From Klebsormidium nitens (lineage: Eukaryota > Plantae > Klebsormidiophyceae): a stretch of 33,284 bases of DNA. Both the position numbers and the translations under genes were made by a program. Below the pieces are notes generated by a model, which was not told the origin of the DNA, made no database searches, and worked only from the letters and a program-made list of their open reading frames with translations. The stretch is from assembly GCA_000708835.1 (NCBI GenBank), contig DF237558.1, forward strand, positions 1 through 33,284. Direction: 5' to 3'. Positions 7,780-33,284 of this stretch are shown one piece after another. The first letter of the stretch is position 1, and each line of letters opens with the position of its first letter.

Positions 7780-8204
7780 GTAAACTTGCCTCTTTCAGAG
7801 CCTGCATCCTCCTATTAAACTGGAGTGTTTGGAGCTTCTTGGTTCAAGTAAAGTCTCCCTGCATATTATAAGTTAGGCCCCTCTTCCATCTAGCGGTCGG
7901 TCTTCCTTTCCTAAGTTCCCATTGGCCAAAACCCCCTTTTAATTAATAATACTAATACTAATAATAGTATACTAATACTATATAGTATTATTATATATAT
8001 ATAATATTACAATAACGGGAACAACACGCTTAAATATCCACGTGTTATTAGTGCCTAGGATGCTTTTTTACGCTGTTTTTATCCATCTAATACCATCCAA
8101 CTACCTCCGAAAAGCACGGGCGGAGTGTACATTGAGACCCCTCACATATTTAACCGTTACCACCCACCATAACCCTATTTTTAACCAATATTTAACCCCA
8201 TTCC

Positions 8205-8362
8205 GAGCACGTATATATTTTAACGGAGTCCTGGATCCCGCTAAAATATATACGTGCTCCAAGTCCACATTAAAATCCCTATTTGTAAGCAGTAATTAAC
8301 CCCACTCCTAGCACGTATATATTTTAAGTGAATCCAGGACTCCGCTAAAATATTCACGTGCT
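8205..8362. repeat. Two ~54-bp hairpin units arranged as inverted copies of each other
   Basis: Unit 1: GAGCACGTATATATTTTA (8205-8222) and TAAAATATATACGTGCTC (8242-8259) form perfect 18-bp arms. Unit 2 (8310-8362) has near-identical arms, and its spacer contains ATCCAGGACTCCG, the reverse complement of CGGAGTCCTGGAT in the unit 1 spacer. Confidence 0.9.
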
Positions 8363-8637
8363 CCGAGTCCTCAGAAAAAAAATTTGAATTTTATCCAGGG
8401 TGGGCGGGTGGGGCAGTATAATATATTTAATAAGGATTAAATTTCCTTCATTTGACGTCTTCCTGAATCCCCCACCAAAACCCCTACAGAATCTCTGGCT
8501 GATATCCTCACAAAAAAAATTTGAATTTCTCCCAGGGCGGGCGGGTAGGGTCGGTATATTGTCTTTCATCTGGATCTTTTTCAAGTCTTTTTGAATCCTG
8601 CACTTTATCACTTCAAAATCATCCTCCCGAATCCTCC

Positions 8638-8660
8638 AAAAAAAAATTTGAATTTTACTG
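8638..8660 (+). promoter_or_regulatory. Inward-facing A-tract/TGAATTTT motif in the TIR (candidate early promoter)
   Basis: AAAAAAAAATTTGAATTTTACTG lies ~43 bp before ATG 8703. The mirror copy at 33172-33194 lies ~45 bp before ATG 33127. Related copies occur at 8374-8392 and 8513-8528 and upstream of many internal genes. Confidence 0.6.
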
Positions 8661-8702
8661 CAGATTTAACTCCGTCTTATTACCCCAACGCGATCATATA
8701 CA

Positions 8703-9047
8703 ATGTCTCCGTCAACAGTTGCTCATCGTGTTTTAAGCAATAGTCTTCCAACTGATATATGTTTACATATTATCGAATTGGTTTTTGGAGTCAACGAAGA
8801 AGACTTGTTTAAGCGATTTCGAGACCTATTCAATGATGCCGAACAATCGTACGATTACCGAAAAAAATTAATGGATGACATGATGGCAGACAATTTTCCA
8901 CCTCATGTTATCAAGAATCATTACAACCGTCTTATTAAATTACCTTACCTGGTGGACGATGGTGATTTTGGATACTATTTGAGTATATTTGCGTCACCAG
9001 AAACTGATAGATTCTTCACAGTTCCACGCTGGTTTCTTCGTATATAA
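8703..9047 (+). CDS. Hypothetical protein, 114 aa; F-box-like LPxDI motif near the N-terminus
   Basis: Clean ATG-TAA ORF directly inside the left TIR; contains SLPTDICLHII. Confidence 0.7.
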   Translation: MSPSTVAHRVLSNSLPTDICLHIIELVFGVNEEDLFKRFRDLFNDAEQSYDYRKKLMDDMMADNFPPHVIKNHYNRLIKLPYLVDDGDFGYYLSIFASPETDRFFTVPRWFLRI

Positions 9048-9155
9048 GACGGGTGGATAGGTATCACTATATTGAAAGCTTGATCGGTTATTACCTTGAA
9101 TAGAGTGTATTATCTGACTTAAGATACTTATTCGGATAGGAAATCTAATCATCTT

Positions 9156-10676
9156 TCAGTCCTTCTTCGTCTTGGCGTTTGTTTTTTTAGTAGGTGTTTT
9201 CTTTTTATTAGAAGTGAAAAGTTCATCGAGTTTGGATTCCAGCATATCGACCTCGTCTTCCGCATCTTTTAACTGTTGTTTCAGTTCGTCTCGTCGCTTC
9301 ACAGCCACCTGGTATCTGTTGATCGTCTTGTTTATAATTCTTTCCCTTGGCGACAATCCTCTTTCCGTACCCATGTCTGAACTCTCTGCTTTTTGCGTGG
9401 TCTGATCTGGTGTCTTCGGTGGTGATGGTGACGGTGATGGTTCGACCTTCTCTTTACCTTTTGACTCTTTCTTCTGCTCCGTCGTTTTCAGATTGGCGAT
9501 GGGAATGTTTTCTTCATCATCAGAGTCAAAGTCGTATTCTTCATCCTCGTCTAGATCTTGATAACCCATCTGAGACGGGATTGAATGCCCCATTCTCATA
9601 CCTAGCTTTCTTCGCTCCGCTATCGATGCTTTTGGATTCTTCCTTAACCACCACGTAATGTACTTACGGCGGAGGATGTTTGCACCTATGTTTTGACTTG
9701 AGTCGATTTCCTTCTTCTTTCCACGTACTATAAGATTGAAGACATCTACTACTTTTCCCGATAAACCTGCTGGAGTATAAGTTACGTTTATAGGTTTGTC
9801 ATTTTTTTGTTTGCAAAGTAGGTACTTCCTCGGAAACGTCTCGTAACTTTTGATGATTGCTTGAGCCAGTTTCGAACCATAACCTTTCCCGAGAACTTCT
9901 TGATATACACCTAGCGTATCAAGAGCACTTTTCTTATATTTTCCGATTCGCATCGTGACTTGCCCATTCTTTTTGTCAATTTCCATCTTGTTATATTCCA
10001 CGGATGCCGTGAATGCTTCATGATTGTCATAAAGTACTACTTTGACAAAATCTTCGATACGACGCGGAGGGATGTCTGTATAAAGCAAAGATAGTATACA
10101 ATGCATTGAGTCGTTCCAATCAGAATCATGCTCATACCCTTCGTTGACTTTATCCACTTTGCGAGCGAAAGTTTCCCATGATAGAATACGTCCGTTATAC
10201 ATAACCTTGGACGACTTGTGTCCAACGTTATCATTCTTTACCCTCTCATGTTCTTTCGAACCTGCATCCATTAGTTTGCTATAGAACAGCAGCACTTCGT
10301 GGCTCAACCCACCGTCCCCCACTACAAGGAATTTATCGATCACGCTTTTGAACGTTGTGAAGAATGTAGTCTGAGAGCTTTTAGCATACCATTCGGTAAT
10401 AATCTTATAAATCTGCTTGGTCTTACTGAAAAACTCATATGCATTCTGTGACTTCCATATTTCGGTTGGAGGTGGTTTCTTCGCTTTTGCCCTCTTTGGA
10501 GGTGGCTTGTTCGGATCTTCTTTTTTGGTTCTCTGACCCTTCTTACGGTTGTCATAAACGATTTGTGCAAGTGCTCTGATACGAATCTCGTAACTTTCAC
10601 CTGTATTGTCAGACAATATCGCTCCTGATGTCAAGTCCTCACACAATTGCTCTAGAGTGTAATCTGGATATACCAT
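9156..10676 (-). CDS. Tyrosine recombinase/integrase (PLV/virophage type), 506 aa
   Basis: Catalytic-like motifs in the expected order: IPPRR (R), IGKYKK (K), NILRRKY (HxxR position with N for H), RMGHSIPSQMGY (H...Y). An acidic/basic coiled-coil tail follows. Confidence 0.82.
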   Translation of the reverse strand: MVYPDYTLEQLCEDLTSGAILSDNTGESYEIRIRALAQIVYDNRKKGQRTKKEDPNKPPPKRAKAKKPPPTEIWKSQNAYEFFSKTKQIYKIITEWYAKSSQTTFFTTFKSVIDKFLVVGDGGLSHEVLLFYSKLMDAGSKEHERVKNDNVGHKSSKVMYNGRILSWETFARKVDKVNEGYEHDSDWNDSMHCILSLLYTDIPPRRIEDFVKVVLYDNHEAFTASVEYNKMEIDKKNGQVTMRIGKYKKSALDTLGVYQEVLGKGYGSKLAQAIIKSYETFPRKYLLCKQKNDKPINVTYTPAGLSGKVVDVFNLIVRGKKKEIDSSQNIGANILRRKYITWWLRKNPKASIAERRKLGMRMGHSIPSQMGYQDLDEDEEYDFDSDDEENIPIANLKTTEQKKESKGKEKVEPSPSPSPPKTPDQTTQKAESSDMGTERGLSPRERIINKTINRYQVAVKRRDELKQQLKDAEDEVDMLESKLDELFTSNKKKTPTKKTNAKTKKD

Positions 10677-10780
10677 TCTGCCTGCCTTATATATTTTAAG
10701 AGCATATAATTCTGGGCAGAATTCGATTTTTTTTCCAGACGAGCATTCAAAACAGAAAATATATTCTCATCTAATTACAA

Positions 10781-11047
10781 ATGACTACATGCAAAATCTG
10801 TTCAGACTTTGAATCCCTGAGACGTGAATATTTAAAACAATGCTATGCTCGCCTTCCCGACGAAGTCAGGAAGGAAAGATCTAGAAAACAGAATATAAAA
10901 ACAAAGCAAAGGTATCTAGATGATCCTGAGTTTAGGCAGAGGCGTCTAGATTATGCTCGCAATCACTACTATGCAAAGAAAGCTAAGCAATCTGCTGCTA
11001 CTGTTTCTAATGCAAAGTCTGCTGATGTTTCTGATGCCAGTTCTTAG
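10781..11047 (+). CDS. Small basic protein, 88 aa; possible DNA-binding protein
   Basis: ATG ORF with an N-terminal CxxC and a K/R-rich helix (RQRRLDYARNHYYAKKAK). Confidence 0.65.
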   Translation: MTTCKICSDFESLRREYLKQCYARLPDEVRKERSRKQNIKTKQRYLDDPEFRQRRLDYARNHYYAKKAKQSAATVSNAKSADVSDASS

Positions 11048-11071
11048 CCTAATGCTGCTGCCAAATCAGAA

Positions 11072-12046
11072 CTATTTCTTGTTCACGTCAGGATCATAGT
11101 GAATCTGAGATTTCCTGTAGACCCTCTTCATTTCCTTATACATCCTATAAGTTGCACTTACGTCTACTCTAGGGTCGATAGGTACTGAGCAGTTCTCTGG
11201 ATCAGGACAGCAGTGAAGCATGTCAACATGGTCTTTACAGAACGGTAGTCCATTGAGGGAATACATAACCTGTTTAACTTTGCACCGTCCGAACATGCAA
11301 GGTGGTGAAAAATCCCCGTACTTAGCACCAAGTTCCCTGAACCGCTTTGCTTTGGGAAACTTAATCACTCCAACATTAGGCCACCGAGGTTGTTGCTGGG
11401 GTTGAGGATTGGGTTGCTGCTGGGGTTGGGGATTGGGTTGCTGCTGGGGTTGGGGATTGGGTTGCTGCTGGGGTTGGGGATTGGGTTGCTGCTGAGGTTG
11501 GGGATTGGGTTGCTGCTGGGGGTGCTGCTGGGGGTGCTGCTGGGGTTGCTCCTCTCCTTGGGGATTGGGTTGCTGCTCTGCTTGCTGCTCTCCCTGCTGC
11601 TGATTTACTTCTTCCCCGTCATCTCCTACTGATTCTTGGTCAGATCTGACCCCAAAATTCAGATGAGAACCATCTGGACGCTGAGTACCATCTATATAAA
11701 AGTTTCCTACGAGAAGTCGAAGCAATCTGACCAGGAAGTATGTGCGTGTTTGATAGATGTAGAGCCGTGCTTGAGCTGCAATTGTCTCGGGAGGAGTCAG
11801 TGGCTGGTGTCTGTTCTCTACAGAATACCAGAAGGCGTCGAACTCAGCATCTGCGAGAGCCCTCCTTAATCTAAAGCGGATTCGCCTTGCTGCCCAATAT
11901 GTGAACAGTCCAAGCAGCCAGCCGGCAAAGAACCATCCCAGCACTATCCTTGTTGCAGAATAATGCTCGCCATCCACAACGAACACATCCCATATCTGCT
12001 TCACGATATTTGGAGGGGCTGGACACTGCTGCTGAGAGTCCGCCAT
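11072..12046 (-). CDS. Predicted single-pass membrane protein with Q/P/N repeats and a Cys-rich C-terminus, ~324 aa
   Basis: First ATG at 12046 (MADSQQQ). Hydrophobic segment IVLGWFFAGWLLGLFTYWAA is followed by RRIRFRLRR, then (QQQPNPQP)x5 and a Cys/His cluster (CMFGRC...FCKDH...HCC...C). Confidence 0.7.
   Translation of the reverse strand: MADSQQQCPAPPNIVKQIWDVFVVDGEHYSATRIVLGWFFAGWLLGLFTYWAARRIRFRLRRALADAEFDAFWYSVENRHQPLTPPETIAAQARLYIYQTRTYFLVRLLRLLVGNFYIDGTQRPDGSHLNFGVRSDQESVGDDGEEVNQQQGEQQAEQQPNPQGEEQPQQHPQQHPQQQPNPQPQQQPNPQPQQQPNPQPQQQPNPQPQQQPNPQPQQQPRWPNVGVIKFPKAKRFRELGAKYGDFSPPCMFGRCKVKQVMYSLNGLPFCKDHVDMLHCCPDPENCSVPIDPRVDVSATYRMYKEMKRVYRKSQIHYDPDVNKK
11388..11580. repeat. 24-bp coding tandem repeat (QQQPNPQP) x5 plus degenerate units
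   Basis: gggttg(g/a)ggattgggttgctgct(g) units run in tandem from ~11398 to ~11518, flanked by 12-bp QQHP units. Confidence 0.9.
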
Positions 12047-12086
12047 TGTCCTTGCTTGCTCCTCGCAGAATGCCTTCCTCTTCGCA

Positions 12087-12226
12087 AATGGTTTCTCAGA
12101 ATGACTTGCTGGAAAGAATGGTTTCCCAGAAATCATTCTGCCCGTGAAACGATTTCCGCAAAACGATTCTGAGTCTCAAATGATTTTCAAAAATGATTTC
12201 CACCGTCAGATATTGACAAAATCATT
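12087..12226. repeat. Cluster of nine AAYGRYTY motifs upstream of the membrane-protein gene
   Basis: Copies at 12087, 12100, 12117, 12130 (reverse), 12148, 12162, 12179, 12192 and 12218 (reverse). TTTCCACCGTC also occurs twice. Confidence 0.6.
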
Positions 12227-12327
12227 TCCACCGTCCGATCTAGGGTTCTGGCAACCGAAAAGGGCGGTCACGCGGTCGGCGGTTTCAACCGCTGAAAGAA
12301 AAAAGGAAAACCGTCGACGCTCGGAGT

Positions 12328-12618
12328 CTACGGAGTATTAGATAAGAACGACGACGCCATGTGAGCTCGCTGAAGCCCAGTGTCGACACGGTCTGCACCG
12401 CGACCAATACCTCTGATTACTTTATTCACTGCCTCAGCACCGCGAGCTCCTTTAGTACCACCAATCGCAGAACCCAAGTGACTGCTCAAGTGCTGCAGAA
12501 GTGGACTAGTACTGTGGAAAATATTGTTTGCATGGTGAACTCCGATCGCCGCTCTTTTCAAAACGTTCTGCCCAAAGTGCAATCCTTTCTAAAGAGTCTT
12601 TCCTAAGCTTCCGAACAT
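12328..12618 (-). pseudogene. Small basic amphipathic-helix protein (96 codons) interrupted by an in-frame TAG
   Basis: ATG at 12618 gives MFGSLGKTL*KGLHFGQNVLKRAAIG...; the TAG is at 12591-12589 and the frame stays open to 12328. The ATG has the same TTATAAAC leader as the MCP gene. Confidence 0.7.
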
Positions 12619-13640: not shown

Positions 13641-14113
13641 TCATATTTTTTCCATTATGAGAGTAAGCTGCCAGTTCGCTGTGATTGGTGTTGTGCTGGT
13701 ATACCTGGATAGTTCGACAGTGATGGTCTTATTAGCAAAGAGACTAGAGTCCGTGATAACCAGTGGTCTCAAATCCTTTTGCAGATGATTTCCTAGCACA
13801 CTGCACAGTGTCGAATCGTTGTTTCGATTGTACGAAGCAAAAGATCTAGTCTGCATCAGCTCCAAGATTGCCACGTTCGTAATCGTATTCACTGTTCCCT
13901 CGATCAAGAATTTTCAACGAAGAGGTGGTAATTTCCTTCTGCCACCAGATTCGGAACGTCCACGTGGAATACGAATTGGTTGTTCATCCCGTTAGACAGA
14001 GCGTCCTGACTGTCCAGAATGATCTTGTAAGGGCGGGGGGTTGGTATTCCAATGAAAGAGTCGTGCTTTAATGAACTATAAGTGTTGGCATATGCAATTT
14101 GCCTGTTCTCCAT
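13641..14113 (-). pseudogene. Second, compact penton-like protein (~157 aa) split by a 1-nt deletion
   Basis: ORFs 14113-13904 and 13907-13641 join if one base is added at GAAAATTCTTG (~13910). The fused product has YKIILDSQD...FVFHV at the start and TITVEL...NWQLTLIM at the end, paralleling the adjacent penton. Confidence 0.62.
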
Positions 14114-14133
14114 TTAATCTTTTGCTTCGATTT

Positions 14134-15412: not shown

Positions 15413-15724
15413 TCATTCCATTTCCTTAATACGCTCTATGATTTCCGAATCTTTCTCGGTATAAATCCAAGCCTTGAACATCGAGTGCAATCTTTTGTGG
15501 TCGAGCAACTTCATTCCATTGACGTATTCATACGGGTGTTGATCTTTGAATAGTTCAACTACATCATCCATCCTCTCGCTCACTAATTTGTCATTTACTT
15601 TGATACCAAAACTAACTTCATAGACTATTATCGAATCGTTCTCTTCGTCTTCATAATAGTCATCAACGGTAGTCTCGACTATCTCGTATGAATTCGCCAT
15701 TGCTTTAACTATCCGATTTGTCAT
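15413..15724 (-). CDS. Hypothetical acidic protein, ~103 aa
   Basis: ATG ORF filling the gap between the ATPase and the next unit; no recognisable motif. Confidence 0.6.
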   Translation of the reverse strand: MTNRIVKAMANSYEIVETTVDDYYEDEENDSIIVYEVSFGIKVNDKLVSERMDDVVELFKDQHPYEYVNGMKLLDHKRLHSMFKAWIYTEKDSEIIERIKEME

Positions 15725-15760: not shown

Positions 15761-16097
15761 TTAGCTCAAATCAACACCTGGGCGTAGTTTCTTTGGTGAG
15801 CCAATGCAACGTACCTTACATGCATCTATGTACATCTGTGGATTGTCGCCCTTGGGTGGATCAGCAAACCCGTGCCCAAATCTACTTGTGGTGTCAGATT
15901 CCACCAACTTGTTTCCGTGGCGAAGGTTAGCATTGAAGAACTGCCCGTTAAATCTGCAACGCCTGCACGCGAATCTCCTCGTCTCTATCTTTTTTGGTGA
16001 AGTGGTTGTTAATTGTCTTCATGGGTACAGTAGGTTCAGGATAAAGGACACTTTTCGTTAACCCAGCGGTCGCGAATGGATACGGTGATATGCTCAT
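15761..16097 (-). pseudogene. Possible ~111-aa protein broken by a +1 frameshift
   Basis: ATG 16097 (MSISPYPFATAGL...) has a TTATAAAG leader and stops at 15948. The +1 frame continues FNGQFFNANLRHGNKLVESD...GVDLS to TAA at 15761. Confidence 0.45.
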
Positions 16098-16139: not shown

Positions 16140-17474
16140 TCACCACACGACCCTCAAGTTCCTCCCTGCACCGACCTCAAGGATACCATCACAGCATGCG
16201 AAAACGTACGGAAGGTATGAACCAGTACCAGCCTGTCCATCCATGTTAGACCAACCAGAGTTGGGAGCAACAGGGGCGGGTAGGGTATAACCGCTCCCGA
16301 CCGTCTGCCAGGCGAGTTGTACTTGATTCCCTGACGTATCCGTTCCACTGATCCACCTGTCAGAAGGACGGCTCGGTTGATCAAAACTGACCATGTGGGC
16401 GAAATAATTTTTCTGGAAGTTAGTCAGGTTGCTCATGGTCGACGTAATATGTGTGCCCGCTATATCCTTGGTCAGACCAAGAACGTCAAGGTTGTTCTCA
16501 TAAATCTCGATGGGCGTCGCAGGCATTGATGGATATTGCACACTGTTCAGAGTGAAGACCGAGGTCGACACGTCATGTCCAACGGAGGTGAAAGCGGTAG
16601 AAGAACCTGTCACGGTGTCAAGGAAACCACCTTGATAGGTTGCACCATTCAAAAAACCACCGATCACATGAGAGAGACTCTTAGAGTTGACTGGAACTTT
16701 GATCGTCTGGTTGGGTGAGCCAGCAATAGCAGATGTTGAGAAGAAATTGTAGTACTTGAAAGGCAGTTGGAGAGGGGCACGAGACATCTCAGACTCGAGA
16801 TCGCTCATGTAGCCTGAGTCGCCAAAAGACCACATGTCTACCGTGCACTTCAGGTTATTCAGAATGACGTTCTGGAAACCGCTTACGGAAGGAAGGTAAA
16901 GTTCGCTGTTGCTGGCACTCATCTTCAGAGCATTGATCCAGGGTTGAGCCACGGTCAGAGCAACACGTACCTCACCAATGACCTGCGTCGAGATGACACG
17001 GGGTTGGATGGACTCGAGCACTTCGCCGAAGTTGGTTAGGCAGAAGGTCGTCGAGGTATTGGCAGTTCCTACAGCAGGAGCAGCAGTTCCAGCAGGACGC
17101 ACGTCAGTTGCTTTGAGAAGAGCGTTGTTCTTGGTGAAACGCCTCTTGAACGTGTCGTTCGCCATCCAGTTCAATTTAATGTTGTTCAGAAGGTTCAGGT
17201 TCTGAGTTCCAGGCACTACTGCTGTACCATTGATCTGAAGTTGGATGTTGGTGAACAGAGACTCGACGTTCGGGGGTGCGAAGTTGGTCGAGTCGAGCTT
17301 GTAGTCAAAATAGAGGCGAAGGCTATCTAACGCAATCGTCCCTGAAGGAAGCACGAAGGTGATCGTCTGACCAGATTGCACGTTCTGGGTCTGGGTCGGG
17401 TAAAAGGTGAACTTGTTCTTTGAGAAGTCTTTTACGATCTGGCATCCGTACTTCAGAGAAGGATGGATAGGCAT
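16140..17474 (-). CDS. Major capsid protein (double jelly-roll, PLV type), 444 aa
   Basis: N-terminal SKNKFTFYP...GQTITFVLPSGTIALDSLRLYFD matches the PLV MCP pattern. Size, beta-rich composition, FTLNSVQYPS in the second roll, and proximity to the ATPase and penton agree. Confidence 0.88.
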   Translation of the reverse strand: MPIHPSLKYGCQIVKDFSKNKFTFYPTQTQNVQSGQTITFVLPSGTIALDSLRLYFDYKLDSTNFAPPNVESLFTNIQLQINGTAVVPGTQNLNLLNNIKLNWMANDTFKRRFTKNNALLKATDVRPAGTAAPAVGTANTSTTFCLTNFGEVLESIQPRVISTQVIGEVRVALTVAQPWINALKMSASNSELYLPSVSGFQNVILNNLKCTVDMWSFGDSGYMSDLESEMSRAPLQLPFKYYNFFSTSAIAGSPNQTIKVPVNSKSLSHVIGGFLNGATYQGGFLDTVTGSSTAFTSVGHDVSTSVFTLNSVQYPSMPATPIEIYENNLDVLGLTKDIAGTHITSTMSNLTNFQKNYFAHMVSFDQPSRPSDRWISGTDTSGNQVQLAWQTVGSGYTLPAPVAPNSGWSNMDGQAGTGSYLPYVFACCDGILEVGAGRNLRVVW

Positions 17475-17502: not shown

Positions 17503-18237
17503 TCAGACCACGTACATAATATCCGTTTCCATCATATCATTTAATTCCAACCAAGCGGACTTGATATTTTTGTATGGTTCGCCCGTTGTTCTGTTCACGA
17601 CTCCCAATTCTGACGCAAACCTCAAAAGTCGTTTCCTAAGTTCCGCTTTCTCCTTTACTTTCCTTTTTATTATACTTTGCTCGTATGCTTCGGTCAGTTC
17701 AAACCATTCCTTTCTGAAAGGAGTCAGATCGACTTTCTCTATTGTGAGAGGAATCTCCTGTGGTGCTTTTTCTTTCGACTTGCTACGGGTTCTTCTAGGA
17801 GATACGACCTCGCTCTGTTCTTCCTCCGCTTCTTTCCTTGACTGTTCTTCTGCATATCTAATTGCTTCTTCCTCTGCTTCTCTTCTACGTGCTTCTTCCT
17901 CTGCTTGTCTCTCGTGCTCCGCCCATTTCTTAAATTGAGCCTCCTGGAACTTCCGCTTCAATTCTTGCAGTCTTTCCAATTCAATCTTCTCCTGTTGCTG
18001 CTGTATCTCGAGTTTCTTTTTCTGTAATTTTAGTTTTTTCTCCTTGATCAGGTCTTTCATCAACCTGTTAAAGAATGCTGACTGGGACTGAGGTTGGTCA
18101 TTGGCACTTATAAACTCCTCCCACCCGCTTGGTAAATCCTCGCCAGCGTGTACCACAGGAAAGGGCGTGATCTCTAGTGCTCTTATACTTCCCACGGGCA
18201 TGGAGGGGATGAAATCACAATCACAGCGTCTGTCCAT
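17503..18237 (-). CDS. Hypothetical coiled-coil protein, ~244 aa
   Basis: Likely start at ATG 18237 (MDRRCDCDF), since the longer track start overlaps ORF 18296. Long E/K/Q/R-rich central helix. Confidence 0.7.
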   Translation of the reverse strand: MDRRCDCDFIPSMPVGSIRALEITPFPVVHAGEDLPSGWEEFISANDQPQSQSAFFNRLMKDLIKEKKLKLQKKKLEIQQQQEKIELERLQELKRKFQEAQFKKWAEHERQAEEEARRREAEEEAIRYAEEQSRKEAEEEQSEVVSPRRTRSKSKEKAPQEIPLTIEKVDLTPFRKEWFELTEAYEQSIIKRKVKEKAELRKRLLRFASELGVVNRTTGEPYKNIKSAWLELNDMMETDIMYVV

Positions 18238-18295
18238 TAAGGTCTCGAGAGAAAAAAATTGAATTTTACTTAGGATGGGAGGATAGCGAGACAAG

Positions 18296-19351
18296 ATGCC
18301 GTCGAGGTGCAAACACATTGGCAATGATGGGGTGAAATGCACCACTCAAGCTACATATGGTTTTCAACGACCGCCTCAAAGATGCGGAACGCATAAACAG
18401 ACAGGGATGAAGGATGTTCATAGCCGAAAATGCGGACATGATGGATGCGAATCATTAAAACCAAGTTTTAACGACGCTGGGAAGAAGACTGGGCGGCTAT
18501 GTGGAGAGCATAAAAAACCAGGAATGATAAACGTTGCTGAAAGAAGACGGTGCAGACATGATGGTTGTGTCAAGGTGTCATGCTTTAATGAGTCTGGACA
18601 GAAGAAGGGTATATTTTGTGAAACGCACGCACTGCCAGGAATGAAGGATGTTAGAAATTCTAAATGCAAACATGGTGGGTGCGAAATACAACCAAATTTC
18701 AACATTCCTGGAAAGAAGAAAGGTGAGTACTGTGAAACTCACGCTGATCCAGAAATGACAAATGTTAAGTCTCCACGATGCAAGTCCGACCATTGCAACA
18801 TGATCATTTCAAACAAGTTCGAAGGATATTGCTTTTACTGCTTCATCAACCTTCACCCCGACGAGCCACTCGTGAGAAATTGTCTGGTCAAGGAACTTGT
18901 TCTGAAAAAAGCCTTGAGCGAAGGGTTGAAAGACAACAGATTTGTTCACAACAAATCCATTCGGGTCGAGATCGAATATGGTATTTACTCCTACAAACGC
19001 CCCGACTTCTACTTCGAAGAAGACGACCATGTCATCATCATCGAAAACGACGAAAATCAACACAAAGATTCTCACTACTCCGACGAACCTGGAAGATATG
19101 ACGCCATCTGCAGAGCCCTGAAGAAGCGTGTCGTCGTTCTTCGCTTCAATCCCGACAAGTACCTCGACAAGGATCAGAATAGACATGTGTCATGCTTCGC
19201 TACAAACAAGGAGACCCGTATCATGTATTTGAAGAACAAACCTGAATACGAGAGGCGGGTTTCTAAACTCGTCGAGAGATTCCTGCACCACGCCAACAAT
19301 GCACCGACCAAGGAGTTCACGGAGGAGAAGTTGTTCTATGACGGTTATTGA
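18296..19351 (+). CDS. EsV-1-7-like Cys/His repeats fused to a PD-(D/E)XK (Vsr/DUF559-like) endonuclease, 351 aa; intact copy
   Basis: Four units of C-x4-C...FN...C-x2-H (one N-terminal variant plus three ~38-40-aa units), then CxxxxC...YCFYC, then RPDF...IIIENDENQH...VVVLRFNPD. AAAAAAATTGAATTTTAC at 18252-18269 lies just upstream. Confidence 0.82.
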   Translation: MPSRCKHIGNDGVKCTTQATYGFQRPPQRCGTHKQTGMKDVHSRKCGHDGCESLKPSFNDAGKKTGRLCGEHKKPGMINVAERRRCRHDGCVKVSCFNESGQKKGIFCETHALPGMKDVRNSKCKHGGCEIQPNFNIPGKKKGEYCETHADPEMTNVKSPRCKSDHCNMIISNKFEGYCFYCFINLHPDEPLVRNCLVKELVLKKALSEGLKDNRFVHNKSIRVEIEYGIYSYKRPDFYFEEDDHVIIIENDENQHKDSHYSDEPGRYDAICRALKKRVVVLRFNPDKYLDKDQNRHVSCFATNKETRIMYLKNKPEYERRVSKLVERFLHHANNAPTKEFTEEKLFYDGY

Positions 19352-22810: not shown

Positions 22811-23199
22811 AAAATTGTTTGACGACCATAAAGATGTGTTGCTTCCAAAATTTGCATTCGAGTAGACAGCATTTGAAAAGGTTGTGAAATTGTTGCTCGA
22901 CCAGACGTATTGCTTCCAAAATTTGCATTCGAGTAGACAGCGTTTGAAAAGGTTGTGAGATTATTGCTCGACCAGACAGACATATTGCTTCCAAAATTTG
23001 CATTCGAGTAGACAGTATTTGAAAAGGTTGTGAAATTATTGCTCGACCAGACAGAGGTGTTGCTTGACCAGACAGAGGTATTGCTTCCAAAATTAGCATT
23101 GCTGTAGATTGAGTTTGAGAATGTTGTGAAATAATTGCTCGACCAGACAGAGGTGTTGCTTCCAAAAGTTGCGTTGCTGTAGATTGAATTTGAGAAGGA
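22811..23199. repeat. 75-bp (25-aa) tandem repeat in the fibre gene, 5 copies
   Basis: Peptide unit TTFSN(S/T/A)(I/V)YSNANFGSNTSVWSSNNF. One unit has an extra 7-aa duplication and one carries the 4-nt deletion. Confidence 0.9.
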
Positions 23200-24608: not shown

Positions 24609-24624
24609 TCATCTTATTATCTTT

Positions 24625-26418
24625 TCAGTAGGACAGCGGCGATCGAGTAAAAGACCCACGCCACCCCGCTGAAGAAGGGATCGTCTGCATATTCACAGTT
24701 CCAGAGACCAAATCATTAAAGTTGACTGCATCATTAGGATAGAAAGTTCCTGATGAGTCTATAATCAGACGAGCGTTGTCACCGTACAGACCTGGCGTCA
24801 TTGATGAATTCGCCTGAATTCCAGTCCCAATCTGCATCACAGAACTTCGTACGACCCCGCCACAGACCACGTCTTTTCCAGTTGATAGATTGCTATTGAC
24901 AAAGACGTTCGAATTGGTCGCGATGAGAGCGGACGTATTCAAATTGCTTTTTAAGTACAGACTATTTAAATTGGACATGTTAAGGTTCGAATCAATCGTC
25001 AGGTTTGACGTGATCTGATTGCTACCGTTGCTATAAGACATGGTTAGTGAGATCCCTCCAAAGTCATGTACCCAAGAAGAGTAGTTCGATCCGTTTTGAT
25101 TCTTTAGAATGATGTTTGAGGTATCTGCTCTGATTCCAGTGGTTGAACTGGTAAGAAATGGGTTCAAATTACTGGTACACTGTAGAAAGACGAAATTACT
25201 TTCGCTCACCTTCAGGTTTGAAGAATTTACTTGGAAATAGTTCGATTGCCCTGTGGTCAGACTGATGTTACAAGTCGAGTTCAAAAGCAACGGAGATGCC
25301 GCGTTTGACCCGTTAGATAATGTAATTACATTACATAGGGTGTTAGCAAATATGAACTTCGTCGAAATGTTGCTGGTGTTGCTAATGTTATTGGTTATCA
25401 TTGGACTGCTGATGTTCAAAGAAGAATTCGAAATGGTCGAGATGCCTGATCCTGCTAACTGGACGCTACCCACGACCAGGTTTGAGGAGGTTATTTGAAT
25501 ATTACTCATGCTAACCGCCTGAGGGTACATGGTCTGAGTATTGAAGTCGATCAGAAGATTCGATCCCGTGGTGGTGTTGTAGAGTGATCCGTTATCTGTG
25601 CTGTAGTTTCCAGTCGGTATCACGAACATCTTAGAAAGATCACTCAAATACAAATCTTTTTTTATTCCGATCGAGTTGTTCGATGTTGCTAGAGGGCGTC
25701 GGAAGACTCGCTCCCACGCAATAATTATAGCATTCGAAGAGTCTGCGTTTGAATCTCCCAGAGCATCGTTGAGGGCATCCTTCAAATCACTAGGGATTTT
25801 CGGTTCTGGACTCACCAAATCCTTAAGAGAATTGTATAAATCATAACCCAAGGACGCTAAATCGAAAGCAGACTGAGCCAGATTGAAAAGGTCGAGCCCG
25901 TTGTCTCCTTCTGGAATGTTTTTAAGAGATGTCCAATCTATCTTGGAATTGGAATCAATAATAGGAACGTTCGATCTATCCAGTATTTGCGAAAGGAAGT
26001 AGATGTTGCTGCTCAGAATAGTCGTCGCGTCTACGTAGTTAGCAAGAAGATTGGATGCCGTGAGATTGCTGGACACTGATAAAACGCTGGTCTGCACGTC
26101 GTAAAAGTCTGCAATGCCTGCCGCAAGGTCAGTCAAAATCAAGTTGCTGCCGAGACCTGAAGAAAACGTTAGATTGCAGAGACTGGCATCATGTGCTTGG
26201 AGTTTTGTGGTGGTTATGTTGCTGGCGACGACATTCGACATAAATCCATAGGTGCTAGCAAAACTGTATGCTTCAATGATTCCAATATCTGCATTAGATG
26301 ATTGCACATTGCTGGTGATTATGCTGTTTGACACCGTGATAGAATCGGTGAGAGGATCGACATCAACCTGATTTTCTAGATTTTGAAGGTAAGGATCACC
26401 TAAATAATAATCTGACAT
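24625..26418 (-). CDS. Ser/Asn-rich fibre-like structural protein, 597 aa
   Basis: Composition resembles the giant fibre. It shares the IDWTSLKNIP / IDYSSLTNKP motif followed by a hydrophobic helix. Confidence 0.7.
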   Translation of the reverse strand: MSDYYLGDPYLQNLENQVDVDPLTDSITVSNSIITSNVQSSNADIGIIEAYSFASTYGFMSNVVASNITTTKLQAHDASLCNLTFSSGLGSNLILTDLAAGIADFYDVQTSVLSVSSNLTASNLLANYVDATTILSSNIYFLSQILDRSNVPIIDSNSKIDWTSLKNIPEGDNGLDLFNLAQSAFDLASLGYDLYNSLKDLVSPEPKIPSDLKDALNDALGDSNADSSNAIIIAWERVFRRPLATSNNSIGIKKDLYLSDLSKMFVIPTGNYSTDNGSLYNTTTGSNLLIDFNTQTMYPQAVSMSNIQITSSNLVVGSVQLAGSGISTISNSSLNISSPMITNNISNTSNISTKFIFANTLCNVITLSNGSNAASPLLLNSTCNISLTTGQSNYFQVNSSNLKVSESNFVFLQCTSNLNPFLTSSTTGIRADTSNIILKNQNGSNYSSWVHDFGGISLTMSYSNGSNQITSNLTIDSNLNMSNLNSLYLKSNLNTSALIATNSNVFVNSNLSTGKDVVCGGVVRSSVMQIGTGIQANSSMTPGLYGDNARLIIDSSGTFYPNDAVNFNDLVSGTVNMQTIPSSAGWRGSFTRSPLSY

Positions 26419-26436: not shown

Positions 26437-27291
26437 CTATTCTTCGAGTATAACGGTAATTCCTTCGTTTTTGAAAAACTTCTTCAATTGGTCGAATGAT
26501 ATAACGGCACTATTAAAATGTTGAATGTAACGTACATAACCGATACAATACCTCTGATGATTTCGATCGTACAATCTTTGCTTTTTAATCTGTCGAAGGA
26601 CACACGGATAATCATCCCCCAAAGTTGGTTTTATCTCGATGCTAATATTCGCTGATAGAAAGGAGCTACGCTTGCCAATAATAGGTTTATAGAACTCATG
26701 ATCGATCTCATTGTATAAGCAACCCAATTCTCCGATGGGTGTTTCTAGTTCCAATGAAAATTGCATATGTTCAAATAATTTACTCTTACGTATGTAAACG
26801 AAATCGTTTTTGGTTATCAATACGTCCGCCCCACTAGAGCATTCAAATTGAATCTTATAAGGCTTCTTGTCCATCCAGTATTCAAAGAAACATCCATTTT
26901 CAACGACTTTTTCAATCCGTATGAACAAATATGAGTCTTTTGTGATGAACTCACTCACTTTCCAGTCTTCTGTCTTTTCAAAGGCAGATTTAGTCTTCTT
27001 CAATAATTCGAGAGTCTTGTCTTTATGCTTTTCAAACAGAGCAGTAACATCGACATTGTGCAAACGCTTGAGAAAAGTCGACATAAAGTCATCATCCAGA
27101 AACTGTATCTGGATCGCGTTGTGATCGGGTGTTGGTGCATCGGTGCTTTGATTCGAAACGATGATGTTATACACGTTTTCGAACTTCTGAAGCCATGGTT
27201 GTTGCTTCAACCATTCACAGTATTTAACATCTGCAAGAAGTTCCGAAACAGGTTTACCTTTATGCTTTCCAAACTCTACCACTTCCTCCAT
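26437..27291 (-). CDS. FGKHKG-motif protein with a putative restriction-endonuclease-like C-terminus, ~284 aa
   Basis: N-terminal EFGKHKGKPVSELL..VKYCEWL (small DUF3820-like module); C-terminal FE..SGADV...SIEIKPTLGDDYPCVLRQIK resembles a PD-(D/E)XK fold. AAAAAAATTGAATTTTGC lies upstream (27312-27329). Confidence 0.6.
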   Translation of the reverse strand: MEEVVEFGKHKGKPVSELLADVKYCEWLKQQPWLQKFENVYNIIVSNQSTDAPTPDHNAIQIQFLDDDFMSTFLKRLHNVDVTALFEKHKDKTLELLKKTKSAFEKTEDWKVSEFITKDSYLFIRIEKVVENGCFFEYWMDKKPYKIQFECSSGADVLITKNDFVYIRKSKLFEHMQFSLELETPIGELGCLYNEIDHEFYKPIIGKRSSFLSANISIEIKPTLGDDYPCVLRQIKKQRLYDRNHQRYCIGYVRYIQHFNSAVISFDQLKKFFKNEGITVILEE

Positions 27292-27434
27292 CAGGATATT
27301 ATCCTTCTTCAGCAAAATTCAATTTTTTTCAATCTAAGAGCAATACTTACTTATACTTCCTCCTTCTTTGAATAATTCTAATACTTTAATCATTTATGTA
27401 ATGAAATAAGAAAAAAAGAGATGTCAAATAGAAT

Positions 27435-27930
27435 GGGTACATTAGTGAAGGTTTGGGTACAATAAGGAACTTTTGGCGATTTTGACTAGACGTGTTTTTC
27501 CTTTCCCTCAACCAGTCCTAATACGAAAAAGTCCGCTAATGTACCCAATCCTTATCAATCAGATTTGGGTACATTAACGAACGTTTCGTGATTTTGACTA
27601 GACATGTTTTCCTTTCCCCTCAATCAGTCCTGTTGCTGAAAAGTTCGTTAATGTACCCAATCCTTCGTTATTCTACCCATACTTTTATTTCTTTATTGTA
27701 TATCTTCAGGATAATTATTCTCAGTGTATAAATTTGTAAGAAAACGAAACAATATCAATCTTAAATAGGTAAGACATTTATATCTCTTAAAAACATGATT
27801 ATATATTATTTAAAAAGAGGGTACATTAGTGAAGGTTTGGGTACAATAAGGAACTTTTGGCGTTTGAGACTACGTGCAGGAAATGAAAAACCTTCTGAGT
27901 CTTTTTGGCAAACTGTCCGTTAATGTACCC
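27435..27930. repeat. Non-coding array of paired inverted GGGTACATTA sites with longer direct repeats
   Basis: GGGTACATTA at 27435, 27567 and 27819; TAATGTACCC at 27537, 27649 and 27921. A 44-bp perfect direct repeat occurs at 27435-27478 and 27819-27862, and a ~76-bp imperfect direct repeat at 27478-27553 and 27590-27665. Confidence 0.93.
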
Positions 27931-28016
27931 ACTTCATATTTCAAATTTCATATATCAATTTCTAAACTTTTGAATTTTACTAATACTTAAAAAGTATCAG
28001 ACTGTAAACAGTAGTA

Positions 28017-29285: not shown

Positions 29286-29636
29286 ATGGATGTTCAATAC
29301 GACAGACGGTTCAAAACCAAACAAGTTCCGCGTCAAACCCCTGAGGAAAAACAGCAAAAGTTCAAGGAATACTGCCAAAAAAACCGAGAGCGGTTTAATT
29401 CGAACGCGAGAAAGTATTATGCTGATCAACCTCTTATTCAATGTGATCCCTGTCGCATCGAACTTCGAGAGAGAAACTTGGAAAGACATGTGCAGACAAA
29501 AAAACATCAGAAGAATCTCCAAAATTATTCTGATCCTAAATTTGAAGAGTGGAAAAAGGGAAATATAATAAAGTCGTTGCGATTGCACGAGTTGGTCAGA
29601 AAGAATGATTTACCTGTCAGGATCAGTTTTGATTAA
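29286..29636 (+). CDS. Small basic C2H2 zinc-finger protein, 116 aa
   Basis: IQCDPCRIELRERNLERHVQTKKH, preceded by a basic helix. Confidence 0.72.
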   Translation: MDVQYDRRFKTKQVPRQTPEEKQQKFKEYCQKNRERFNSNARKYYADQPLIQCDPCRIELRERNLERHVQTKKHQKNLQNYSDPKFEEWKKGNIIKSLRLHELVRKNDLPVRISFD

Positions 29637-30118: not shown

Positions 30119-30571
30119 TCAAACGCATTTGTTTCTGGTAACCTTGCTGATCCTGAACCAGAACTCGGGTTCTAATTTGCCATCAATAATATCAGTGAGT
30201 GTAGCAACACTGTCAATGTTATCTTTCGCCTCTCCGTTATTGAATTTTGCGTGATATTCAACGGAATCAACTACAAAGATTGACTTCAGTTTCGTCACTT
30301 GGTTTGTGGCGTTTTGTTGAATATACTCGACCAAGTGACGCAACCCTCTTTTGTACACAGTGAGCCACCCGTAAATCATATGTTCTTTGAAGAATGCCTT
30401 CTGACCTGCTTTTGCTCCTATAAAATCATCCAGTTGCAAACGACACTTTTCAAGAAACACCATAGTCTCGTAAGGATCCATCTCTTTTATGAGATTTTCA
30501 GTGATTTCATCCATCTTAACTTCATCCTTGCTGAAGAAGACCAATCTCTGTTCGGGTGTAAGGGCATCCAT
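30119..30571 (-). CDS. Hypothetical protein, 150 aa
   Basis: ATG ORF with an A-tract/TTGAATTTTGC motif at 30601-30621, ~30 bp upstream. Confidence 0.7.
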   Translation of the reverse strand: MDALTPEQRLVFFSKDEVKMDEITENLIKEMDPYETMVFLEKCRLQLDDFIGAKAGQKAFFKEHMIYGWLTVYKRGLRHLVEYIQQNATNQVTKLKSIFVVDSVEYHAKFNNGEAKDNIDSVATLTDIIDGKLEPEFWFRISKVTRNKCV

Positions 30572-31914
30572 TTTCTAATGTTGATATCTTTCGACATTCG
30601 GCAAAATTCAATTTTTTTTTTCGAATGAGAACATAATATCCATTGTAAAATAACTTTTCTTCGGTGAATTCTTTCGTGGGGATGGTCTTGGCATGGTGCA
30701 AAAATCTCTTAATGAGAGTGTCAGTTCGTATCTCATAGTCTTTCTTGTTCTTGAGGTACATAACGCCTGTCTTCTTGTTCACTGCGAAGCAGCTCAAATG
30801 TCTGTTCTGCTCCTTATCGAGGTACTTGTCTGGGTTGAAGCGGAGCATCACTACAGGTCGAGTCCCCAAATTGAACATGATCTCCATGCTACGTCGGTTC
30901 TCGCACATCTCGTCCCTGTCGTTGTGCTGGTCTTCGTCGTTCTCGATGATGATAACATGCGTGAACATGTCGATCAGAAAGTCGGGGCGTCTGTCTCTGC
31001 AGCCCCCCGACCCATCCACGTCGATCCTCTTGTTGTAGGTAAACTCGTAATCCTTCAGGCGTTCTTTCAGTACTTCTTTGAGAGCACGCTCTTTGGTTAG
31101 ATAGTTTCGGACGGACTGGCTCGTCAGGAAACAGGTTGACATAGCAAAAGAAGCAGTAACCTTTATACTTTTTTTGTACACGTGTATCGCAGTGGTCAGA
31201 CTAGCATTTGGAATTAACAACGTCTTCCATGTCTACTTTTGCATGGTTTTGGCAAAATCGCCCCATCTTTTCGCCAACGTTGTTGAAAATTGGTTGTGTG
31301 TTACAACCCTCATGCTCGCACCTTTTGTTGACAACATCTTCCATACCTGATTTCTTATGATTTTCACAATATTTTCCCTTGGTCTCGCCTTTGCTGTTAA
31401 AAGTTGGTCGGATTTTGCATCCATCTTGTTTGCATCTCGAGTTTTTTACGTCATCCATACCTGGTTTTTTGTGTTTTTTACAGTATCGATCAGTCTTCTC
31501 AGTAGGGTTGTTGAAGTTTGGTTCGGTATTGCACCCAACGTGCTCGCATTTTTTGTTTACAACGTTTTCCATACCATCTGTTTTGTGTTTTCCACAATAT
31601 CGACCAGTCTTCTCATCAGGATTGTTGAACTTTGGTTGCGTCTTGCATCCCTCATGCTCGCATGTGGGTGAAACGAGATCTTCCATTCCTGATTTCTTGT
31701 GTTTTCCACAGTATCGCCCTTCGGTCTCATTAGGGTTATTGAATTTTGGTCGAATCTTGCATCCCTTATGTTCGCACCTTCTTTTCTCGACGACGTTTTC
31801 CATCCCTGGTTTTTTGTGTTTTCCACAAAATTGTGGTGGACATTGAAAACCCTGAGTCGCTCGAGTTCCACACCTCACTCCATCATCGCCGACATACTTG
31901 CACCTACTGACCAT
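30522..31914 (-). pseudogene. Second EsV-1-7-like repeat + PD-(D/E)XK nuclease gene, disrupted between the repeat array and the nuclease
   Basis: True start at ATG 31914 (MVSRCKYVGDDG). Six Cys/His units, five of them 38 aa. In-frame TAG at 31203-31201 (C*SDHC versus CKSDHC in the intact paralog), then an extra C at ~31113 shifts into the nuclease frame (RPDF...IIIENDEDQH...LRFNPD...KLFYNGY). Confidence 0.85.
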
Positions 31915-31971
31915 CTTGCTAACGGTACTCGGGATCGAAGCAAAATTCAAATTTTTTTCCAACCAGACATA

Positions 31972-32454
31972 ATGGCAATCACATTCAAGCAACTTCAAAA
32001 AGTACTGCCTAACGACATCGTGGAAAAAATAGTTTTGCTCAAACTCGAGAAGGAAATCAAAACTGATCCGATCGCCTTCGTGATGAACGGAAAGACTGAA
32101 CTGACGCCCTACCGAAAGTTTCATGTGTTTGATCACATCGTCCAAGGAAAGGTCAACATGACTTCGATCAAATCCTTTTTTAAATTGTACGAGCAATATA
32201 AGGAGAATGAACATTTCTTGAGTTGTTTTTGGCGTGCTTTATACTTTCGTCTTATCAATAATCATCAGAGACATGATAAATACTGGAAAAATGTCAATGA
32301 CTTTATCCTTGAATGTCGTGCTCTCTGGTGTAATTCAAACCACAAGCCATATAAGGTTGATCATGCAAAAAAACCATCAACATGTCTCAAAATGCCCAGA
32401 AAGAATAGCAAAATGTACAAGGCTTTCACGTGGTTCTTTGCAATAGCGGACTGA
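31972..32454 (+). CDS. Hypothetical protein, ~160 aa; F-box-like LPxDI motif near the N-terminus
   Basis: Likely start at ATG 31972 (MAITFKQLQKVLPNDIVEKIV); the longer track ORF overlaps the repeat gene antisense. Confidence 0.65.
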   Translation: MAITFKQLQKVLPNDIVEKIVLLKLEKEIKTDPIAFVMNGKTELTPYRKFHVFDHIVQGKVNMTSIKSFFKLYEQYKENEHFLSCFWRALYFRLINNHQRHDKYWKNVNDFILECRALWCNSNHKPYKVDHAKKPSTCLKMPRKNSKMYKAFTWFFAIAD

Positions 32455-32457
32455 GAC

Positions 32458-32649
32458 TTATTCAGACCATTTCCAACCAGGAATAGTTTCTATCAAGCGA
32501 ATTCGTGCATCAGACAGTTCACCGTTTTTATATTGACGCCTTCGTGCTTCTTGCCACAGTTTTGTTCCATAGTCTTCATTACTGTTGAACTTGCAAGTCG
32601 GATCGGACAATTTGTTGCCTTTGCAACGACAGCAGCGGCACTCTGTCAT
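32458..32649 (-). CDS. Stand-alone helicase-associated (HA) domain protein, 63 aa
   Basis: KLWQEARRRQYKNGELSDARIRLIETIPGWKW matches the HA-domain pattern (W...QR..YK.G.LS..RI..L...G..W). An A-tract/TTTTGAATTTTAC motif lies upstream at 32678-32701. Confidence 0.62.
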   Translation of the reverse strand: MTECRCCRCKGNKLSDPTCKFNSNEDYGTKLWQEARRRQYKNGELSDARIRLIETIPGWKWSE

Positions 32650-32713
32650 GGTTGCTGCTTTCCGACCATAAATCTCCAGTAAAATTCAAAAGTTTTTTTT
32701 TCGAGGACTCAAA

Positions 32714-33127
32714 TTAGTCTTCTTTTCGCAATTTGATGGTAAACTGAACTCCGACACGATAAGATGCATGATATGCACTTACTTTTATTGATTTTCCTTC
32801 AAATATAGGATACCTATATTGAACATATCGATCGTCCTCATTTTCGGCATCATAATCGTAAAGTAGTGATGTCATTGCAAGATGAAACAATTTCTTTTTT
32901 TTTGATACAGGTAGTTCCATATACTGATAATTTGCATCATCATCTTCGTCGTCATAAGGGTTTTCGACGTATTCGTAAAACACTAAATTATGGGTATTAA
33001 ACGATGTCATTTTATCAAGTGGAATTTCATCGTCTATTCGGTATTTATCTCCGTCAAAAACGTCTCCTACGACATTTCTATATATCCTTCCATCTGTTCT
33101 GTTAGGAATATGGATAATAGTCTCCAT
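32714..33127 (-). CDS. Hypothetical acidic protein, ~137 aa
   Basis: ATG 33127 (METIIHIP) lies directly inside the right TIR, mirroring ORF 8703. Confidence 0.65.
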   Translation of the reverse strand: METIIHIPNRTDGRIYRNVVGDVFDGDKYRIDDEIPLDKMTSFNTHNLVFYEYVENPYDDEDDDANYQYMELPVSKKKKLFHLAMTSLLYDYDAENEDDRYVQYRYPIFEGKSIKVSAYHASYRVGVQFTIKLRKED

Positions 33128-33145
33128 TTTGAAAGTAAGAAGGAA

Positions 33146-33284
33146 GGGGTAATAAGACGGTCGGAAGTCTCCAGTAAAATTCAAATTTTTTTTTGGAGGA
33201 TTCGGGAGGATGATTTTGAAGTGATAAAGTGCAGGATTCAAAAAGACTTGAAAAAGATCCAGATGAAAGACAATATACCGCCCC
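33146..33284 (-). repeat. Right terminal inverted repeat (truncated by the window end)
   Basis: 33172-33280 is the exact reverse complement of 8552-8660. Confidence 0.93.

Follow-up and report, generated by a model that had tools for sequence, protein, structure and literature searches.

An endogenous Polinton-like virus of Klebsormidium nitens without recognisable replication genes

Introduction

Polinton-like viruses (PLVs) usually carry a replication gene, which may be pPolB, TVpol, a primase-helicase of the archaeo-eukaryotic primase (AEP)/D5 type or a superfamily 1 (SF1) helicase, but such a gene does not define the class. The literature leaves it largely unknown whether PLVs should be seen as autonomous viruses, as parasites in the manner of virophages or as transposon-like elements. 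Here we analyse a PLV integrated in the genome of the alga Klebsormidium nitens, within positions 1–33284 of the 52.9 kb scaffold DF237558.1 (this whole stretch of 33,284 nucleotides is referred to as the window), in which no replication gene is recognised. An initial annotation of the window had noted this absence and held that PLVs normally carry such a gene, which is overstated, because many endogenous PLVs have no detectable polymerase (Bellas et al., 2023). Neither the element nor the bare lack of replication genes is unprecedented.

Among the described systems, the element resembles PgVV/Gezel-14T in its major capsid protein (MCP), putative minor capsid protein (mCP), A32 ATPase, putative tyrosine recombinase and tail-fibre-like protein, and also in a AAAATTGA-type early motif that lies upstream of non-structural genes, among them the recombinase gene. 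Mimivirus and PgV have AAAATTGA as the core of their early promoters, and it stands upstream of Yrec, TVpol and other genes of Gezel-14T, which is a helper-dependent PLV (Gezel-14T study). In contrast to the window element, Gezel-14T encodes TVpol (a polymerase with a superfamily 3 helicase), and the host and the gene order differ. The endogenous MCPs of streptophytes have been placed in the PgVV group by a survey that screened K. nitens and in its supplement lists the species with the figure (number) 7 (Bellas et al., 2023).

The endogenous TsV-S2x PLVs of Tetraselmis, which are reactivated by the giant virus TetV-2 and have a helper-dependent lifestyle, share with the element a green-lineage host, terminal inverted repeats (TIRs), a tyrosine recombinase (putative in the element) and a division into an arm of structural genes and an arm of variable genes. 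However, their D5 helicase-primase adjoins the recombinase, as in a second K. nitens lineage described below and unlike the window. PLV cluster VC40 (2026 PLV framework preprint) likewise has no detectable replication gene, but it is 15–20 kb long and has Tlr6F, a DNA methyltransferase and an NCLDV/Yaravirus-like MCP (NCLDV, nucleocytoplasmic large DNA virus), none of which is seen in the window. Virophages (Sputnik, mavirus) and Polintons/Mavericks also combine a double-jelly-roll MCP and an A32 ATPase with integration into host genomes, whereas no cysteine protease, RVE integrase or pPolB is detected in the window. Virophages use helper promoters; in Sputnik and mavirus this is mainly the late promoter of the helper, in contrast to the early-type motif of the window.

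What appears to be new is the comparison of one gene slot with that of a replicase-encoding lineage in the same genome, together with the fibre exchange and the two-class promoter pattern proposed below. One host genome thus offers a natural comparison, in which two lineages share gene order and fibre genes and differ in the primase-helicase and the upstream motif; the link of replication-gene content to lifestyle becomes testable. The element also shows that the range of such elements includes a streptophyte alga, which stands close to the base of the lineage of land plants.

Results

Delimitation and capsid module of the element

The element is the AT-richer part of the window, is approximately 26 kb long and runs from ~7937 to the window end, with at least 25.3 kb inside the window (Table 1). 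The GC content is mostly 56–69% in the host part and 34–50% from ~7900 onward. The terminal inverted arms at 8548–8686 and 33146–33284 match over 139 nt and are 95% complementary. The left outer boundary is set solely by the composition switch and the onset of AT-rich sequence; because the right arm runs off the window end, it is not checkable against the other end. The interior (8687–33145) lies wholly inside the window, and 27 genes occupy 91% of it. The initial description of a near-complete element with an interior tiled by open reading frames (ORFs) needs qualification, since the right TIR extends past the window end and four of the genes carry breaks.

The element belongs to a lineage that includes L001 and L008, which are partial genomes from one Logan run (SRR23617307), and L002/L003, from JGI metagenomes. 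Their MCPs are 69% (L001), 52% (L002) and 39% (L008) identical to that of the window. A second, divergent endogenous PLV is present in the K. nitens genome (DF237950.1, positions 1–12511, hereafter L010), with the related metagenome contigs L011 and L012; the core proteins of this second lineage are 27–31% identical to those of the window. L002, L011 and L012 derive from the samples JGI 3300060284/5. L006 and L007 represent a more distant PLV. The nuclease, the MCP and alignments of the MCP and of the ATPase were each run against IMG/VR and returned nothing, as did two scans of JGI metagenomes and an exact look-up of the MCP. L005, which carries the closest homologue of the 292-residue nuclease, was considered as the other half of the L002 element and rejected (GC 50% vs 36.5%).

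The MCP has 333 HMMER relatives among 1.8 billion representatives. Its AlphaFold2 (AF2) model, which was built on 58 relatives, has a pLDDT of 84 and a pTM of 0.85. In BFVD it gives 124 matches at E≤1e-3; these are double-jelly-roll capsid proteins from giant viruses, virophages and adintoviruses, and the best has E=1.7e-29 and a TM-score of 0.73. A sequence search of PDB with the MCP returned nothing significant; the HMMER relatives, the model and its BFVD matches confirm a double-jelly-roll MCP. The Pox_A32 match of the packaging ATPase is above the Pfam cut-off, and the protein is 87% identical to the L001 ATPase. The putative penton gene has no family match, and a profile of it gave nothing significant in PDB sequences, but it is kept at the expected position in six elements, with identities of 85% to L001, 49% to L008 and 22–29% to L006, L010 and L012. 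The coiled-coil protein that adjoins the MCP gene is likely a structural or scaffold protein.

The assignment to the PLVs is supported by the MCP, the A32 ATPase, a size within 14–40 kb, the TIRs and the lack of a pPolB and RVE integrase pair. Of the full capsid module and tyrosine recombinase described initially, the MCP and the ATPase are confirmed, the penton is assigned by position and the recombinase at the motif level.

Absence of recognisable replication genes

Pfam, run on all of the ORFs, gave no polymerase, primase or helicase, and neither did PHROGs and NCBIfam for the unassigned ORFs. Pfam also gave no match to pPolB or the RVE integrase and no protease family in any ORF, and thus no cysteine (adenain-like) maturation protease as in virophages. 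The families named by the ORF scans are Pox_A32 (the ATPase), EsV-1-7 (two paralogous genes) and ExoX-like_C (the 292-residue ORF). An NCBIfam match of the 354-residue ORF to 'DNA polymerase III gamma/tau' was rejected as a low-complexity artefact of its PQ repeat, far below the cut-offs.

A six-frame Walker A scan revealed the packaging ATPase and, as a weak match, one ORF that runs antisense to an EsV-1-7 gene; three further matches contain a stop or sit in open frames of 35–58 codons. A tblastn search with PLV primase-helicases found no match in the window or its close relatives. A hidden Markov model (HMM) of three PLV primase-helicases, searched against 435 open pieces (≥30 residues) of the element, gave a best E of 0.053. 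The element is an endogenous PLV without recognisable replication genes, and this original claim holds under every test run.

The primase-helicase slot in two lineages

The gene order in L010 and L012 is MCP, reverse-strand ATPase, 156-residue gene and penton, followed by a primase-helicase before the recombinase. The 96-residue gene of L010 stands between the penton and the recombinase, in the same order as in the window. The L010 primase-helicase is an intact 871-residue ORF (5922–8537, reverse strand) with AEP_C962R (E=3e-56), PriCT_2 and D5_N domains, and the L012 protein is 76% identical to it. The NCBI model of the L010 gene is a spliced 850-residue gene. In L006 and L007, a protein of 912–916 residues with AEP-PriCT2-D5 domains is encoded directly upstream of a homologue of the 292-residue nuclease.

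In contrast, the window slot, from the 96-residue gene to the recombinase, contains the 354-residue PQ-repeat ORF and the 88-residue ORF. L001, which is collinear with the window over 10.3–19.6 kb, has genes of 275 and 91 residues in the same slot, and L008 has a 144-residue gene. None of these three members of the lineage has the primase-helicase in its slot, and no remnant of it is detectable in the window element. Because the window, L001 and L008 all have the slot without the gene, the absence is a lineage trait at this slot rather than a private deletion. Between its 96- and 275-residue genes, L001 also carries approximately twenty iteron-like 10-nt repeats (ACTCAGTTCA / ACTCGGTTCA; 8375–8586).

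The slot comparison bears on the possibility that this is a defective copy, from which a replication gene was deleted after integration while intact siblings carry one. The copy is a slightly decayed provirus. When breaks are counted against the intact L001 orthologues and the element's own paralogue, four genes are broken: two small genes of the structural module (one frameshift each), one small gene (one in-frame stop) and the second EsV-1-7/nuclease copy, in which one frameshift separates the frames of the two domains and the aligned stretch includes one stop symbol. All other conserved genes are open, among them those for the MCP, penton, ATPase, recombinase and nuclease. These breaks and the 95% likeness of the TIR arms show decay after insertion, and an AEP-D5 primase-helicase is encoded by related PLVs, including L010 in the same genome. 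However, the slot also has no such gene in L008 and in L001, where all ORFs are open and the proteins are 47–87% identical to those of the window; in the window it is filled by ORFs, one of which is conserved with L001. No remnant is detectable in the 435 open pieces, genes cover 91% of the interior, and its one large gap (725 nt) consists of repeats in an ordered array. A deletion private to this copy is therefore unlikely. The question of the initial annotation of helper or host dependence versus a lost module is answered in part: the module was lost or replaced at the level of the lineage, and the early-type motif described below favours a helper.

Fibre-like genes shared between the lineages

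The three fibre-like and fibre-associated genes (597, 449 and 1077 residues) were compared between L011 (2300–9775), L012 (874–8951) and the window (19361–26418). The encoded proteins are 57–71% identical in their best-conserved stretches across the two lineages, whereas the MCPs are only ~29% identical. This pattern suggests that modules that would serve host recognition are exchanged between PLVs of one host. Between its fibre genes, L012 contains a fragment-sized gene for a D12-class N6-adenine DNA methyltransferase (3144–3446); the counterpart of this position in the window is the 162-residue ORFan on the opposite strand.

If Klebsormidium hosts two fibre-exchanging PLV lineages, one with an AEP-D5 primase-helicase and one that has shed it and retains just capsid, recombinase and nuclease genes under helper-type early promoters, the replicase-less one could parasitise replication in trans, from a giant helper virus or from the co-resident PLV. 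We regard this scheme as speculative and decidedly improbable; if true, dependence on a co-resident PLV that encodes a replicase would form a further layer beyond virophage-like parasitism.

Putative recombinase and nucleases

The 506-residue protein is 47% identical to the product of a 530-residue gene of L001. RR..D, [YF]K, LR[RH], MG[HTS]S and Y show no variation among four homologues and occur in the order expected for a tyrosine recombinase, although the first His of HxxR is not conserved among the four. No match was found in Pfam, PHROG, NCBIfam or PDB, the last by single sequence and by profile. These motifs identify the protein as a putative tyrosine recombinase.

The 292-residue protein belongs to a family with at least 75 homologues, and E157, D163, E226 and K228 are invariant in 43 sequences. 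Its AF2 model (pLDDT 76) has restriction-endonuclease-fold nucleases as best PDB neighbours, with weak scores (E≥0.04), and matches uncharacterised Marseillevirus-like proteins in BFVD at E=3e-11; a sequence search of PDB returned nothing significant. The protein is a PD-(D/E)xK nuclease and not a replicase. A homologue of its N-terminal part is present in L009 (Logan SRR28285603), a contig rich in F-box, BTB and kinase genes. L009 was considered as a PLV and rejected as giant-virus-like. This homologue and the Marseillevirus-like BFVD matches show that giant viruses also have members of this nuclease family.

The two genes that fuse EsV-1-7 repeats to a PD-(D/E)xK-like domain are inverted paralogues with one orthologue in L001. 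The EsV-1-7 motif is otherwise known from the Ectocarpus virus and brown algae.

Promoter-like motifs

A motif consisting of an A-run and T(T)TGAATTTT, with the core AAAATTGA (also written A-run/TTGAATTTT), matches strictly at eight places in the element and nowhere in the 7.9 kb of host DNA (shuffle mean 0.83). Six of the eight lie 25–51 nt upstream of the ATG of an ORF of at least 100 residues (background 8.5%, P=9e-6), and close variants are located upstream of the recombinase and the 204-residue ORF. The motif thereby precedes eight non-structural genes at 25–55 nt, namely the ORF beside each TIR, the recombinase, all three nucleases (25 nt for the 292-residue nuclease, 31 and 30 nt for EsV copies 1 and 2) and the 150- and 204-residue ORFs. 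Each of three ~130-nt repeat units in the left TIR also contains one copy (8379, 8516 and 8643); a 104-nt tandem palindromic pair lies at 8173–8379.

The structural genes have no such motif and instead carry a TATAA-like AT-rich sequence directly before the ATG, a pattern that may represent a late-promoter class. TATAA(A/G/T)-like sequences are found within ~12 nt of the ATGs at 17474, 12618, 16097, 13478 and 14487. Orthologous positions in relatives carry the early-type motif too: in L001 it stands upstream of the EsV-1-7 gene and the recombinase gene, and in L008 upstream of one gene. L006 and L007 have an A-run+TGAAAT version before their primase-helicase and nuclease genes. In L010 and L012, another variant precedes the primase-helicase and two neighbouring genes, and this differs from the motif of the window.

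The motif bears on how the element replicates without a replicase. Dependence on the host would mean that the recombinase excises and integrates the element and that the host nuclear replisome copies it, as an episome or only within the chromosome. A giant virus would play no part, and the upstream motif would act as a promoter of the element's own or one read by the host. The recombinase-like gene and the TIRs are consistent with this, TsV-N1-type PLVs are reported as autonomous nuclear viruses, and a giant virus of Klebsormidium is, to our knowledge, not described. Against it, the motif core is that of the giant-virus early promoter of a proven helper-dependent PLV, the motif does not occur in the 7.9 kb of host sequence, and the different upstream pattern of the structural genes fits a viral temporal programme. 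We thus give exclusive reliance on the host a small chance.

A repeat array with candidate cis-acting sites

The largest non-coding stretch (27292–28016) lies between the divergent nuclease and 204-residue genes and carries inverted GGGTACATTA/TAATGTACCC sites, arranged as three units inside 112-nt repeats. Eight of the ten GGGTACATTA matches of the window fall in this stretch (chance mean 1.3), and the sites were not found in any other locus examined. Its folding as single-stranded DNA is stronger than that of shuffled sequences (z=-5.1). In L005 and L006, the nuclease homologue has other repeat arrays directly upstream of it. We infer that the stretch is a candidate origin or regulator-binding array.

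Either an unassigned ORF or the nuclease-recombinase pair acting on the array could be a divergent replication initiator; the candidate ORFs are the 204-residue zinc-finger ORF and those of 162, 150, 137, 130 and 114 residues. The 204-residue ORF adjoins the inverted-site array, carries a variant of the early-type motif and has no homologue among 5.8 billion proteins and nothing significant in PDB. Repeat arrays accompany the nuclease in three lineages, in L006/L007 its homologue adjoins the primase-helicase gene, and replication enzymes may escape detection (Bellas et al.). However, the candidates are at most 204 residues long and have neither a Walker A motif nor a family match, and a lone initiator would still need a foreign replisome, which overlaps with dependence on a helper or host. 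A cryptic initiator of this type seems improbable to us.

Discussion

Proposed dependence on a helper virus

We lean, with moderate confidence, towards a PLV lineage that has shed its primase-helicase and relies on a helper for transcription as well as DNA synthesis; this helper would most likely be a giant virus, whose early promoter the element copies. The reasoning rests on the Mimivirus-type early core, which is shared with the helper-dependent Gezel-14T and from which helper transcription and replication are inferred. The non-structural genes would be read by the transcription machinery of a giant virus, and the DNA of the element would be copied by the replisome of the helper in its factory. 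The TIR repeats and the inverted-site array may act as cis-acting sites, while the recombinase and nucleases of the element would handle integration, excision and processing; in the integrated state, the element would be copied passively with the chromosome. The helper-type promoter motif is indirect evidence for a possible virophage-like lifestyle, in which the element would replicate only with a co-infecting giant virus. K. nitens carries NCLDV-like inserts, which we count in favour of this proposal.

Several points weigh against helper dependence. The NCLDV-like inserts are typed as Phycodnaviridae-like, not Mimiviridae-like, and we know of no helper virus for Klebsormidium. The putative promoters are assigned by motif resemblance and position, not by transcripts. 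For approximately ten ORFs, neither a homologue nor a fold is assigned, and an unrecognised replication protein could be among them. The other arm of L001 and L008 was not recovered, so a replicase may lie elsewhere in their genomes, and the four broken genes make further loss in the window copy possible.

Host flank and deposited gene models

The features of the window are summarised in Table 1. Searches for tRNAs and Rfam families gave no match. The gene models deposited for K. nitens treat the element incorrectly: they give the MCP as a 337-residue spliced protein (KFL_006090040) and the 354-residue ORF as a 148-residue product (11365–12046), and none of the ten right-arm ORFs that were looked up has an annotated protein.

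The adjoining host gene model contains the Pfam domains CDT1 and CDT1_C (positions 20771–22290 of the K. nitens record L004, which map to the window up to 7467; L004 matches window 5948–28237 at 100% identity) and has a GC content of 50–69%. Farther left in the host part, otherwise at 56–69%, the GC content dips to 45% over 1 kb (2001–3000). The element lies ~470 bp upstream of the start of CDT1, which encodes a replication licensing factor.

Table 1. Coordinates of the features in the window.
Feature	Position	Strand	Evidence or remark
Adjoining host gene, CDT1 gene model of K. nitens, 5' part	5948..7467	-	extends leftwards past 5948
Left terminal inverted repeat	7937..8686		8548–8686 is the part matched to the right arm
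ORF, 114 residues	8703..9047	+	no homologue; motif 49 nt upstream of ATG
Tyrosine-recombinase-like protein, 506 residues, disordered charged C-terminal tail	9156..10676	-	motif level
ORF, 88 residues, basic, N-terminal Cys pair	10781..11047	+	52% to L001
ORF, 354 residues, predicted hydrophobic segment, PQQQPN repeat, Cys-rich C-terminus	11072..12136	-	
Homologue of the L001 96-residue gene, broken	12328..12618	-	one in-frame stop
Putative penton (minor capsid) protein, 279 residues	12639..13478	-	conserved at the same relative position
Homologue of the L001 156-residue gene, broken	13641..14133	-	one frameshift; also in L008, L006, L010
Conserved small gene, ORF of 144 residues	14134..14568	-	probable ATG 14487, giving ~118 residues
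A32-type DNA-packaging ATPase, 292 residues	14513..15391	+	Walker A GGLGSGKT; Pfam Pox_A32 E=5e-7
ORF, 103 residues, acidic	15413..15724	-	no homologue
Homologue of the L001 111-residue and L002 108-residue genes, broken	15764..16097	-	one frameshift
Major capsid protein, 444 residues, double jelly-roll	16140..17474	-	HMMER relatives, AF2 model, BFVD
Coiled-coil charged protein adjoining the MCP gene	17503..18345	-	probable ATG 18237; conserved in L001, L002, L008
EsV-1-7 cysteine-rich repeats (four) with PD-(D/E)xK-like domain, copy 1	18296..19351	+	EsV_1_7_cys E=1e-42, PDDEXK_4 E=0.04
Fibre-like N/S/T-rich protein, 1077 residues	19361..22594	-	69-nt tandem repeats; start codon uncertain
Repeat-rich fibre-associated protein, 449 residues	22780..24129	-	71–96-nt repeats make the 3'-end frame ambiguous
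ORF, 162 residues	24120..24608	+	no homologue
Fibre-like N/S/T-rich protein, 597 residues	24625..26418	-	69% identity over residues 90–597 to an L012 gene
PD-(D/E)xK nuclease, 292 residues, N-terminal ExoX-like_C/DUF3820 motif	26437..27315	-	ATG 27291; Pfam E=4e-4
Largest non-coding stretch, 725 nt	27292..28016		between the divergent nuclease and 204-residue genes
ORF, 204 residues	28017..28631	+	N-terminal CCHC zinc-finger-like motif
Highly charged protein, 198 residues	28674..29270	+	homologues in L002, L008
ORF, 116 residues, basic	29286..29636	+	zinc-finger-like
ORF, 130 residues	29633..30025	-	no homologue
ORF, 150 residues	30119..30571	-	no homologue; motif 34 nt upstream
EsV-1-7 repeats (six) with PD-(D/E)xK-like domain, copy 2, broken	30522..31914	-	Pfam E=1e-66
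ORF, ~159 residues	31975..32454	+	weak similarity to an L008 201-residue gene (phmmer E=4e-5); no Pfam match
ORF, 137 residues from probable ATG 33127	32714..33241	-	no homologue; upstream region with motif lies in the right TIR
Right terminal inverted repeat, inner 139 nt	33146..33284		continues past the window end

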